This document shows positions 38,830-41,304 of a DNA stretch of 64,000 nt, in pieces. How positions within the stretch are numbered: the first letter of the stretch is position 1; each line of letters starts with the position of its first letter. The notes under the pieces are model-generated. The model saw nothing but the letters and a program-made list of their open reading frames with translations, did no database searches and was not told the DNA's origin. Position numbers and translations under genes: made by a program. Location of the stretch: the sequence record PV231353.1; one strand, given 5' to 3'.

Positions 38830-39446
38830 GGGCCGTCCTTCTGCATTAGCCCCGCCGTCGCGCCTTCCAGGCGGCACGGGCCGGGACGGTGGTTGGTGAC
38901 GAGCAGGCCGAGGCAGCGGCGGGCGAGTCGAAGGAGAACCCGGCGAGCGGCGGAAGGCGTCGTTGACGCCCTCGGACTCGACAAGCACGGGGTGATGCCG
39001 GAAATCACCGCGATCGCGCGGACGTCTGGACGTTGCTAGGCGTAAGGCAGGCCTGCCGAGAAGTGGAAACGGCCGGGGCGGGCGGGACTTGATCTCGTCC
39101 GCCTTTCCGCCTAAGCTTCCCTCATTGCAGGCGCAGCACCGCCCTTCGCTAACGGCCCCGAGGGGTACGCAAGGGCTAGAAGCCTTGCCTGGGACAGGAC
39201 TGCCTCTGATCCAGGAACGCCCTGGGCCGCGTAGCGCCCATGACGCGAACGCCGGCCGAGAATGGGCGACTAGGCGTGACGGCGGCCAGAGGCCGCAGCG
39301 ACATTCCAAGCTCGATAGAGCGATCGGCGGGCCGGGGCGAAAGCCCTGTTTCGAGAGCCAGGGCAACCCGTCATAGGTCCTGGTCGGGCGACGAGGCAGC
39401 AAGTCCCGCGAACGGAGCCTCTGAGGCGGCGTCACCAAGATGCAGC
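38830..39446 (+). ncRNA. ROOL-like large ornate RNA (core 38893-39438)
   Basis: Perfect 9-bp closing stem TTGGTGACG/CGTCACCAA; ordered blocks GTTGCTAGGC..AAGG, CTAAGC..TCATTG, TAGC..C..GACGC, TTCCAA, CTGTT..GAG.GC, ATAGGT resemble ROOL as recalled; own promoter and terminator. Confidence 0.7.
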
Positions 39447-39451
39447 AGACG

Positions 39452-39486
39452 CAAAAAGGCCCCGATCGCGAGATCGGGGCCTTTTC
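39452..39486. terminator. Bidirectional Rho-independent terminator
   Basis: aaaaaggccccgatc-gcga-gatcggggcctttt. Confidence 0.9.
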
Positions 39487-39490
39487 ATGT

Positions 39491-39579
39491 TGGAGCTTCG
39501 GGAGGGACTCGAACCCTCATAGGTGTTCCCACCAGCAGAGATTTGCAATCCCGCGCCTAACCTCTCAGTCCACCGAAGC
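39491..39579 (-). tRNA. tRNA-Cys(GCA) with long variable arm
   Basis: 7-bp acceptor GCTTCGG/CCGAAGC, U73, encoded CCA, T-loop TTCGAGT, anticodon loop TTGCAAA, variable stem GGTG-GGAA-CACC. Confidence 0.9.
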
Positions 39580-39626
39580 ACAAAAGGACCTCGACGCCCG
39601 AAGGCCCGAGGTCCGATCCGTAACCA

Positions 39627-39754
39627 GGGGAGGGCCGTAGCTGTCCCCTGACCCTGAACGACAGGTGGCGGGCTTGGTCGTCATCCCGTCAGGCTCGCGG
39701 CGCCGCTCGCCTGAACCGCCGATATGCCACGAGGGCAGTGATCCGCAGGTCCCC
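39627..39754. ncRNA. ~128-nt rod-shaped RNA, 6S-like candidate
   Basis: GGGGA/TCCCC ends, stem-bubble-stem architecture, GTCCCCTGA and CCTGAACC blocks; hairpins on both sides; strand unresolved. Confidence 0.35.
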
Positions 39755-39763
39755 ATAAATAGC

Positions 39764-39798
39764 AAAAAGGCCACGATCCGCGAGGACCGTGGCCTTTT
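39764..39798. terminator. Bidirectional terminator
   Basis: aaaaaggccacg...cgtggcctttt. Confidence 0.85.
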
Positions 39799-39804
39799 CG
39801 TTTT

Positions 39805-40676
39805 CCGATGGGCTGAGACTACACCCATCAGCAATCCCGCTTCGAGGATTATTCCCCAGGTGCGACCCCAGGTATTCCCTCGACGTCCACCAGACCCCTT
39901 GCGGTAGTCCAGTCCGAGATCATCGCCGCCGTTCTTGCGCACCCCGAAGGGATTGCGGGTCTGGCGTTTGACCCATCATGGCGAACTACTCGACAGTTCC
40001 TTCCCCGCTGGGCTTGCGACCCACTCACCGGCGCTAACCGGCTGACGAAGCTCTTCCTATCGACACCTCGCGGGCTTGCGACCCTTGAGATGACTCCGTT
40101 ACCCGAAGGCCGGAGCATTTGGCGACTTACGTCCGCCACTGGACCAGTCTTTGCGTTTTTCATCGAAGCGGGGATTGAACCCGCGACCGACAGCTTAAGA
40201 GGCTGTTGCACTACCACTGTGCTATTCGCAAACCCACCAAGACGTGCTGGTCCAGTTGTTCCCAGAGCTTTTGACCCCAGAAATGCAACACGCCTCATAT
40301 CTTTCGCCTTGCGGGCTACTCGACTGCTCTTCAGGACCCCGTCTCCCCCAACCTTTCGGCCAGGATGCCCAGCACCCCTCGAACTGAAGCAAAGCTCTTC
40401 ACCGCGAAGTGTCGAACCCTGCAACCCAAACGGTTATCCGTACTCCCTAGACACGCTTGCACGGGATAGTCCGCTTGCGACGGACTGGCGGTTAAAGCCT
40501 CGGAGTTACCCCGGCCCCGCCTTGTCTCCCACGGTCTTCAGGTCTATCCCCTTTTGCAAGAGGCGGCCAGCTTCCCAGCCCGGACCCGTCGGCTTCCTCT
40601 GTCCTCTTGCGAGGTCGGGCGGCCTATGGGAGACCGTCCCTGTCACCCCGTCGCCGGGGCTTTCGTCAGAAGCGAC
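39805..40676 (-). ncRNA. GOLLD-like giant ornate RNA
   Basis: About 870 nt between a promoter and a terminator; many GNRA-capped hairpins on the minus strand; 3' blocks GAGUAGUUCG, AGGGAAUACC, GAAUAAUCC, GUGUAGUCUCAGC; tRNA body inserted in the middle. Confidence 0.7.
40161..40231 (-). tRNA. tRNA-Lys(CUU)-like body embedded in the GOLLD-like RNA (degenerate acceptor, no CCA)
   Basis: Intact D arm GCAC/GTGC, anticodon arm ACAGC-CTCTTAA-GCTGT, T arm GCGGG-TTCAATC-CCCGC; only 4 contiguous acceptor pairs. Confidence 0.8.
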
Positions 40677-40682
40677 GATGAC

Positions 40683-40711
40683 GTTCTAGCGACAGCCAAA
40701 GTCGTCGTCAA
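40683..40711 (-). promoter_or_regulatory. Sigma70 promoter for the GOLLD-like RNA
   Basis: TTGACG-N15-GCTAGAAC on the minus strand, matching the Caulobacter sigma70 consensus. Confidence 0.8.
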
Positions 40712-40767
40712 CGACTTTTTTCGTCTCGCCCTCGAAATTTTTCGACAGTCGTGGGTGACGACAGTGC

Positions 40768-40796
40768 TTGACATTCTCGGAGCCGCGTGCTAGGTG
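40768..40796 (+). promoter_or_regulatory. Sigma70 promoter for tmRNA/tRNA transcript
   Basis: TTGACA-N17-TAGGTG (GCTAGG). Confidence 0.75.
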
Positions 40797-40799
40797 TCG

Positions 40800-41175
40800 G
40801 AAATCGTTGTAATTCGGACAACGGAACTGGCGGCAAGACAGGGGTGCGAATCCCCTCGCCTCCACCATCGACGCCCGGCGCTGGGAGTACGCGACTCCTG
40901 GGCAGGGAGTGTTACCCTGGCGGGCTGCGGCCCGAGCCAAAGGTAGCCGGGCGTCGTTGATGGGGGCGACTAGCTTTCGATTGGCGCTCGGGACTGAAAG
41001 ACGCAACGGTGGGTGACCTCCACATCGGCTTGCCGGTGATCGGGTCAGGCAACAGTAAATGTCGCCGCCAATGACAACGACGTCGTGGCTTTCGCCTCGG
41101 CTCGTGAAGCCATCGCCGCCTAATAAGCGGTAGAGGAGCCCGCCGGGAGCTTGGCAACAGAATCCCGGCAACCCC
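40800..41175 (+). ncRNA. ssrA: Two-piece (permuted) alphaproteobacterial-type tmRNA
   Basis: Acceptor piece ends CGCCTCCACCA (40867); coding piece starts GGGGGCG (40962), giving G3:U70; tag frame 41061-41123 VAANDNDVVAFASAREAIAA*; inter-piece helix CGGCAAG/CTTGCCG. Confidence 0.93.
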
Positions 41176-41304
41176 CTTTCGCAGGCGGGAACACCAACAG
41201 GCGATCTGTCGGGCGACCGATTTCCGATCCGTGTTCCCGTCTTCGAAAGGTGGTCAGGCCTACCCTCTTGGTGTGCTATCCAAGGGTCTGGCCACTTTAC
41301 AGAA

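Follow-up and report, generated by a model that had tools for sequence, protein, structure and literature searches.

GOLLD genes are found close to transfer RNA (tRNA) genes and may themselves include a predicted tRNA (Weinberg 2009, as cited in PMC6582537). The tRNA inside the Mycobacterium GOLLD is a pseudo-tRNA, and no separate RNA corresponding to it was detected (PMC6582537). Cryo-electron microscopy (cryo-EM) of other GOLLDs has revealed self-assembly into cages of 10 to 14 subunits (PMC12286853, PMC12990946), in which the variable linker, itself not resolved, faces the interior and "sometimes" contains phage tRNAs (Kretsch 2025, PMC12286853). The Mycolicibacterium GOLLD carries a tRNA-Phe in J13/15, and a 2026 review suggests "inhibited storage" of such a tRNA (PMC12990946). 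GOLLD has been without a known function since 2009, and the 2025 structures showed an interior linker that sometimes holds a tRNA, not its purpose. Here we analyse the tRNA-like module in the linker of a GOLLD RNA encoded by a window of 64,000 nucleotides (nt) from sequence record PV231353.1, identified by exact identity over 6.7 kilobases (kb) around the site as Caulobacter phage RBC57, a phiCbK-like Shapirovirus. The comparisons indicate that this element is almost certainly an integral GOLLD linker module maintained by selection. A linker tRNA in GOLLD is already published, while the family-level regularities described below are, to our knowledge, new; a literature search of limited coverage retrieved no paper joining GOLLD with an anticodon analysis or with phiCbK.

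The module and its linker in phage RBC57

The Rfam GOLLD model matched the minus strand of the window from 40296 to 39810 over all of its positions (1-416 of 416), with an E value of 8e-46 and a score above the gathering score of 150. The conserved stems of the 3' domain were present in the Rfam alignment, as were the pseudoknot arms 40140-40131 / 39986-39977. Within this match, at 40231..40160, lies a body that ARAGORN called as tRNA-Lys(ctt) (40232..40159, minus strand) and that the Rfam tRNA model recognised with 56.1 bits over model positions 4-67 only, the top of the acceptor falling outside the match. Its D (GCAC/GUGC), anticodon (ACAGC/GCUGU) and T (GCGGG/CCCGC) stems are complete, the T loop is UUCAAUC, and U8, G18G19 and T54-C56 are present. 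A preliminary description of this DNA, made from the letters alone, had proposed a tRNA-Lys(CUU) body inside a GOLLD-like RNA, with intact D, anticodon and T arms, a perfect Lys loop and a decayed acceptor of four base pairs (bp) without CCA. The stems read from the sequence and the agreeing ARAGORN and Rfam calls bear out the first part of that description, and the acceptor corresponds to the second. Only C4-G69, G5-C68, A6-U67 and A7-U66 are Watson-Crick pairs; G3xA70 and U2xU71 are mismatched and U1.G72 is a wobble, so that the stem falls short of 7 bp. A73 is followed by AAAACGC and not by CCA; all three free tRNA genes in the window end in CCA.

The main tRNA array of the sister phage Magneto contains free tRNA-Lys(CUU), tRNA-Lys(UUU) and tRNA-Gly(UCC) genes with 7-bp acceptors and CCA ends. 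Because well-formed free copies are present in that array, the embedded copy is redundant for decoding. GenBank records of phiCbK-like phages list the embedded module as an ordinary tRNA-Lys or tRNA-Gly and leave GOLLD itself unannotated. The tRNA totals of these phages therefore take in a non-canonical element, and these "tRNA-Lys" and "tRNA-Gly" annotations should not count as decoding capacity.

The linker that holds the module is closed by a helix of 9-10 bp between ACUGGACCAG (40256..40247) and CUGGUCCAGU (40147..40138). This helix is supported by covariation, with 16 distinct arm pairs and exchanges between G-C, A-U and U-A at pairs 4-6. Equivalent 9-bp helices were found in the GOLLDs of Mesorhizobium phage Cp1R7A-A1 (CUGGGUCAG/CUGACCCGG) and Sinorhizobium phage Phosso (CAGAGACAG/CUGUCUCGG) and in the tRNA-less GOLLD of Roseobacter phage DSS3P8 (CCGUGCCAG/CUGGCACGG), and metagenomic GOLLD relatives have the equivalent helix too. 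Because it is also present in the tRNA-less DSS3P8 GOLLD, the helix belongs to the general architecture of GOLLD and was not built to carry the tRNA; it crosses the stem GAGGCGUG/CACGUCUU and is therefore itself a pseudoknot. The long helix that had been described under the tRNA body is thus real and covarying, but it is not specific to the tRNA, and the UCUU/AAGA extension drawn for it was unsupported. These extra pairs compete with the conserved Rfam stem GAGGCGUG/CACGUCUU (40296..40289 / 40246..40239), whose 3' strand includes that UCUU, and fall in the universally conserved AAAGACU. A thermodynamic fold of 40130-40300 gave the helix and the arms with a z value of -0.8, which is not significant; because of this value the fold was not counted as evidence, and the support for the helix is comparative.

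Selection, loop alleles and cassette exchange

Relatives of the module were collected from viral contigs and metagenomes with a sequence pattern whose two anchors were the T loop and the conserved 3' flank (GGTTCRA and ACGCAAAGACTG were required), and the invariance of the ACGCAAAGA motif across the clade follows from its use as a search anchor. De-duplication left 61 unique modules in strict GOLLD context; the sequences are related, and the counts below are not counts of independent events. All 14 metagenomic relatives tested were Rfam GOLLDs, with 166-226 bits. The GOLLDs of Mesorhizobium phage Cp1R7A-A1 and Sinorhizobium phage Phosso scored 193 and 187 bits and carry a homologous module in the same place; each of its three stems contains compensatory changes, its acceptor top is likewise unpaired, and the loops are UUCAGGA (Leu CAG, on a 72-nt class-I body) and CUUCUAA (Arg UCU). 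A scan of genome contigs gave nearly all chance matches; L233, from a metagenome-assembled genome, and L276 look like true GOLLD linkers, and the lake clade was left without host assignment. A 14-mer scan (AAACGCAAAGACTG) for tRNA-less members of the clade gave, among the matches listed, random coding matches only.

The D, anticodon and T stems were paired in 59-61 of the 61 modules (counts inflated in the metagenome subset, which was pre-filtered for paired stems), with two to five pair types at most positions, against about 30 of 61 at variable positions in shuffles. Acceptor pairs 4-7 were paired in 57-58 of the 61. Pairs 1, 2 and 3 were paired in 30, 31 and 37 modules, against 28, 32 and 28 in shuffles, which is chance level. 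CCA followed six of the 61 modules; among the free-standing tRNA genes of the first contig set it was present in 512 of 523 unique genes (98%), and 444 of those 512 had seven of seven acceptor pairs. Because pairs 1-3 and CCA are lost family-wide, the 4-bp acceptor without CCA in the window is the norm of the family and not a local decay. An alternative pairing of UUUGCG (40232-40227) with CGCAAA (40155-40150) would complete an acceptor-like helix in the window; it is invariant in three alphaproteobacterial versions and absent from the lake clade.

Embedded modules with a 7-bp acceptor and CCA were found in contigs L078, L303, L307, L371, L394 and L276, with the unusual anticodons AUG, UAU, UUA (which would read the UAA stop), AUU, UAG and GCC. 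The embedded module of L054 has the anticodon UCA, which would read UGA, six of seven acceptor pairs and no CCA. Free-standing CUA "Pyl/amber" tRNAs occur in L040 and L078.

We then compared 13 phiCbK-like Caulobacter phages, about 99% identical, aligned over 6.7 kb. The 487-nt Rfam GOLLD span contains nine variable columns among these phages, five of which are the contiguous loop positions 33-37 (40200..40196), and the anticodon loop is the only hot spot of variation in the match. If the columns were independent, a concentration of five of the nine in a single 7-nt loop would have a P of about 1e-8, and one or two block replacements are the more likely origin of the loop difference. The allele C-UCUUA-A was found in five phages (RBC57, Magneto, Karma, Ccr5 and Swift), C-GUCCU-A, annotated as tRNA-Gly(TCC), in seven (phiCbK, Ccr2, Ccr10, Ccr29, Ccr32, Ccr34 and S2L) and C-AUCCU-A in BL57. 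The GUCCU and AUCCU alleles form no working anticodon loops because U33 is absent and U37 is present; the canonical loop (U33, purine 37) of the window is thus not kept among its orthologues, seven of which have CGUCCUA and one CAUCCUA. The embedded anticodon singled out in the preliminary description is, across these relatives, not constant (three alleles in 13 phages), and the canonical Lys loop stands in five of them.

The body of the module outside the loop is invariant in the 13 phages. In the comparison with BL57, none of the 67 non-loop module positions had changed, whereas the probable GOLLD 5' domain upstream differed by 11% and the neighbouring tRNA-Cys gene by 8%; by our own arithmetic, the probability of zero changes in 67 positions at about 10% divergence is near 1e-3. 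The arms are therefore kept by selection. Neutral decay of the D, T and anticodon arms across relatives, the outcome that the preliminary description had named as fatal to its proposal, was not seen: these 67 positions were unchanged, and the stems of more distant relatives carry compensatory changes.

No block covarying with the loop alleles, as an intramolecular kissing partner of the loop would, was found elsewhere in 39400-41300 among the 13 phages. Self-complementary loop tetramers (UUAA, CUAG) are within chance, and kissing of the loop was dropped. A scan of IMG/VR for further phiCbK-type loop alleles yielded only phage Karma, and a scan of metagenomes yielded none.

Across the wider family the architecture of the loop is kept, with U33 and A38 each in 56 of 58 modules, A37 in 51 of 58, and U35 and U36 in 70-78%. 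The commonest loops were CUUUUAA (14), CUGUUAA (13), CUCUUAA (7) and CUAUUAA (4). NUU-AA loops (Lys UUU/CUU, Asn GUU) accounted for 38 of the 61 modules (62%), against 42 Lys or Asn genes among 523 free tRNAs. Rarer loops were Arg UCU, Thr UGU, Ile GAU, Glu UUC, UCA and some of eight nucleotides.

Mapped on a tree of the GOLLD flanks, the loop shows 26 changes, and the modules do not track the tree; positions 34, 35 and 36 change 18, 13 and 9 times, and stem positions 10-21 times. The clearest case is the pair L020:11242-11709 and L060:7568-8033, whose 3' domains match at 100% along about 330 nt and whose 5' hairpins nearly do, while the acceptor, D, anticodon and T stems and the loop all differ between GUAGGUU and AAAACGCAAAG, which mark the recombination breakpoints. 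Whole modules thus pass as cassettes between GOLLDs that are otherwise identical. An origin of the module as a recent copy of the phage's own cognate tRNA was rejected: module cores are unlike the cognate free tRNAs of the same contigs, and their best core matches (0.8-0.9) are tRNAs of unrelated identity.

The neighbourhood of the GOLLD locus

Between 39700 and 40400, 17 further Caulobacter phage records align with the window at 97-100%. The stretch of about 400 nt upstream of the Rfam match (40297..~40700) is gene-free in GenBank records and conserved among the phages, and conserved blocks are also found upstream of the Mesorhizobium and Sinorhizobium phage GOLLDs; it is probably the GOLLD 5' domain. 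Many of the changes that separate it from its counterpart in BL57 are adjacent to one another. On the other side, the 230 nt between the GOLLD 3' end and the tRNA-Cys gene (39580-39809, minus strand) show three differences from BL57, a conservation equal to that of GOLLD, and contain two terminator-like hairpins (39800..39763 and 39607..39586); this segment may be an additional structured RNA or may extend GOLLD at its 3' end. The features of the locus are collected in the table.

Features of the GOLLD locus in the 64,000-nt window of Caulobacter phage RBC57
Feature	Position	Strand	Basis or remark
GOLLD RNA, Rfam-covered part (first stem-hairpin, variable linker, conserved 3' domain)	39810..40296	-	Rfam RF02032, 169.4 bits
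Probable GOLLD 5' domain, upstream limit approximate	40297..40700	-	conserved blocks; outside any Rfam model
Intrinsic terminator directly 3' of GOLLD	39755..39800	-	17-bp stem and T run
tRNA-like module, 72 nt	40160..40231	-	ARAGORN, Rfam tRNA model, reading by hand
Acceptor 5' strand	40231-40225	-	sequence reading
D arm	40222-40208	-	sequence reading
Anticodon stem	40206-40202 / 40194-40190	-	sequence reading
Anticodon loop C32 U33 C34 U35 U36 A37 A38 (Lys CUU)	40195..40201	-	polymorphic block = positions 33-37 (40200-40196)
T arm	40184-40168	-	sequence reading
Acceptor 3' strand	40167-40161	-	sequence reading
A73	40160	-	sequence reading
A-rich trailer and conserved ACGCAAAGA motif, connecting module to helix, no CCA	40148..40159	-	sequence reading, clade comparison
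Leader GGUGGGU, local form of the clade-wide GUAGGUU motif, 5' breakpoint of cassette exchange	40232..40238	-	clade comparison
5' arm of linker-closing pseudoknot helix, (A)CUGGACCAG, inside internal bulge of first Rfam stem	40247..40256	-	pairs with 40147-40138
3' arm of linker-closing helix, CUGGUCCAG(U), abutting Rfam pseudoknot arm 40140-40131 (partner 39986-39977)	40138..40147	-	Rfam alignment and covariation
3' strand CACGUCUU of outer Rfam stem, partner GAGGCGUG at 40296-40289	40239..40246	-	Rfam consensus structure; stem recurs in relatives

ARAGORN placed a tRNA-Cys gene, two tRNA-Met genes and a transfer-messenger RNA (tmRNA) gene within 1.6 kb of GOLLD, and the locus thus shares the location near phage tRNA genes that is a feature of the family. 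The tmRNA gene is of the two-piece (permuted) type, lies at 40775-41214 on the plus strand, divergent from GOLLD, and was recognised by Rfam tmRNA_permuted (71 bits) and by ARAGORN with the tag VAANDNDVVAFASAREAIAA; it is without annotation in the GenBank records of phiCbK-like phages. A tmRNA also adjoins GOLLD in Roseobacter phage DSS3P8 and in contig L046. The tRNA-Cys gene of the window (39491-39579, minus strand) reached only 33.8 bits on the Rfam tRNA model, and free phage tRNAs for Cys, Lys and Asn, identities that are normally class I, are 87-90 nt long with long class-II-like extra arms (39491-39579; L080:37351-37532; L016:742-926 and 1160-1247). In BL57 (L015) the spacers between genes near window positions ~39488, ~40766 and ~41173 carry insertions of about 150, 47 and 80 nt, and the RNA genes are intact. 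A manA RNA motif (Rfam, 59 bits) is present at L078:5770-5941, within the tRNA/GOLLD island of an uncultivated phage.

Explanations for the module and comparison with known systems

We propose tentatively, as the most likely of the readings considered but one that stays short of probable, that the module is a tethered, uncharged tRNA mimic inside the cage which is read via its anticodon arm. It is a tRNA-like cassette of a large phage GOLLD clade, set at a fixed linker site between the first stem and the covarying pseudoknot helix, and selection maintains its L-shaped body (U8, the GG of the D loop, a UUCRA T loop and three arms) and not acceptor pairs 1-3 or CCA. Because these pairs and CCA are not maintained by selection, the module most likely stays attached and uncharged, and the module of this phage in particular is probably tethered and non-chargeable. 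The displayed, non-chargeable tRNA-like body of the preliminary description is supported by arms under selection, by the family-wide loss of the acceptor top and CCA and by a proper free tRNA-Lys(CUU) elsewhere. Covalently attached, the module would be bound as a tRNA, chiefly via the anticodon arm, by a tRNA-binding partner. The fast replacement of loops in near-identical phages, the exchange of cassettes on identical backbones and the NUU bias towards Lys and Asn suggest, more weakly, that this partner could be part of a tRNA conflict between phage and host, in which the module would serve as bait, sponge or shielded copy for anticodon-directed nucleases; a defence-related role appears somewhat unlikely when judged by itself.

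tRNA-Lys is the classic target of PrrC. The loops favoured in the modules (Lys UUU/CUU, Asn GUU and some Thr UGU) overlap the published targets of AriB of the PARIS system, which are Lys(UUU), Thr(UGU) and Asn(GUU) (PMC12409363), and phage tRNAs evade defence nucleases by changes in the anticodon loop (PMC10264068, PMC11464382). A nuclease decoy, as put forward in the preliminary description, would be compatible with a tethered mimic and is a reasonable hypothesis. A more elaborate version, in which the cage makes a multivalent display of 10-14 tethered uncharged anticodon arms, mostly Lys and Asn, as bait, sponge or protected sensor for nucleases like PrrC, RloC or PARIS, and in which cassette recombination tracks local defences, is improbable.

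Several points weigh against a nuclease decoy and, in part, against the tethered mimic itself. The natural substrate of PrrC is the UUU tRNA, not CUU, and the window module has G39, while E. coli AriB depends on U39. For a decoy the position is awkward, because cryo-EM places the linker, and with it the module, inside the cage (PMC12286853), where a nuclease may have no access. Among the 13 closest phages there are eight with CGUCCUA or CAUCCUA, which lack U33, have U37 and mimic no real tRNA; whatever reads the loop needs no faithful Lys mimic in those eight phages. The NUU bias may reflect shared ancestry, the common variants each being one step from UUU and forming a neutral cloud around an ancestral UUU. 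About 10% of the modules (for example L078, L303, L307 and L276), with seven of seven acceptor pairs and CCA, may be releasable as real tRNAs, and the inflation of the paired counts by the pre-filtered metagenome subset also counts here.

One alternative is that the module is a stored pro-tRNA, which RNase P (ribonuclease P) and 3' processing would excise and which, once CCA is added, would serve translation, for instance as a substitute for host tRNA-Lys that a defence nuclease has destroyed; the covarying helix and the pseudoknot would then hold the two remaining GOLLD pieces together. In the window the cloverleaf is complete and its Lys loop canonical, six of 61 relatives have a full acceptor and CCA, and the linker-closing helix would keep a cut GOLLD assembled; all of this agrees with the explanation, and CCA can be added enzymatically. 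It corresponds to the published "inhibited storage" (PMC12990946). We nevertheless regard it as unlikely, given that the window and the Mesorhizobium and Sinorhizobium versions have only four Watson-Crick acceptor pairs, that pairs 1-3 are at chance across the family, and that 55 of 61 modules lack the CCA which 98% of the neighbouring tRNA genes possess. Anticodons also switch on one body without the matching identity elements (a class-I body with Leu CAG; Asn GUU with U73 or C73), module cores are unlike the cognate free tRNAs, proper free copies are already present, and the pseudo-tRNA of the Mycobacterium GOLLD was undetected as a separate RNA (PMC6582537). It is extremely unlikely that the module is just a normal, working tRNA-Lys gene situated in the GOLLD region: gene finders do call it and records annotate it as tRNA-Lys or tRNA-Gly, but the 4-bp acceptor without CCA, the "Gly-UCC" alleles without U33 and with U37, the conserved GOLLD structure on both flanks and the redundancy with well-formed free copies all speak against it.

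The body could instead be architectural, an L-shaped filler or organiser of the cage interior, a nucleus for folding, or a handle for RNase P or tRNA enzymes, with the loop as its unconstrained tip; a cargo or processing signal, the alternative named in the preliminary description, may also be its role. The strong conservation of the elbow and arms, the change of positions 34-36 at about the rate of the stems (18, 13 and 9 against 10-21), the non-canonical loops of phiCbK and BL57, and a DSS3P8 GOLLD that dispenses with the module would all be expected. If the tip were unconstrained, however, U33, A37 and A38 would not persist in about 90% of the modules, or U35/U36 in 70-78%; five adjacent changes on a 99%-identical background are not neutral drift, and the replacement of whole cassettes on identical backbones suggests that the identity of the cassette matters; we hold this explanation, too, to be unlikely. 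A ligand of the translation machinery, whose tethered anticodon arm would dock on ribosomes at AAG/AAA codons, or on a translation factor, and so link the cage to ribosomes, seems very improbable. Binding of ribosomes to GOLLD has been reported from pull-downs (cited in PMC12286853), the locus is an island of translation RNAs with a tmRNA next door, and the loop architecture is canonical, but the interior location argues against access of 70S ribosomes, the sister phages have non-canonical loops, and the support is circumstantial.

Any function proposed for GOLLD is now constrained by a tRNA body under strong selection, an abandoned acceptor, NUU-biased loops and the replacement of loops and cassettes on identical RNAs. 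If the multivalent display of anticodon arms were true, it would give GOLLD a function. The phiCbK-like phages on Caulobacter crescentus are a tractable system with natural loop alleles in hand.

The module described here shares with the other GOLLDs that hold a linker tRNA its RF02032 family, the insertion site between the 5' and 3' domains and the context of phage and tRNA island, and in Mycobacterium the internal tRNA is also a pseudo-tRNA, unseen as a separate transcript. It differs from them in its alphaproteobacterial (phiCbK-like) phages, its Lys CUU loop and its 4-bp acceptor; the literature searched describes neither loop alleles that differ between sister phages nor a loss of acceptor pairs 1-3 and CCA throughout the family, and no bias towards NUU or exchange of cassettes either. 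The counter-defence tRNAs of T5, directed against PARIS or retron nucleases, are similarly phage-encoded, belong to the same anticodon classes and vary chiefly in the anticodon stem-loop. They are free-standing, chargeable, cleavage-resistant replacements of cleaved isoacceptors, whereas the GOLLD module, tethered and without CCA or a full acceptor, is no such replacement and could at most bind.

The tRNA-like domain of tmRNA is likewise a tRNA-derived part of a larger structured RNA, and in two-piece tmRNAs the halves are held together by helices. Plant-virus 3' tRNA-like structures and mascRNA-type RNase P signals are tRNA mimics in longer RNAs that are recognised by tRNA-specific proteins. 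These latter mimics need an acceptor-like end for RNase P, the CCA-adding enzyme or a synthetase, and the GOLLD module does not maintain one. In the tmRNA domain the acceptor, CCA and T arm are retained, alanine is the amino acid charged and an anticodon arm is missing; the GOLLD module shows the opposite pattern, an anticodon arm that is kept and an acceptor end that is lost.

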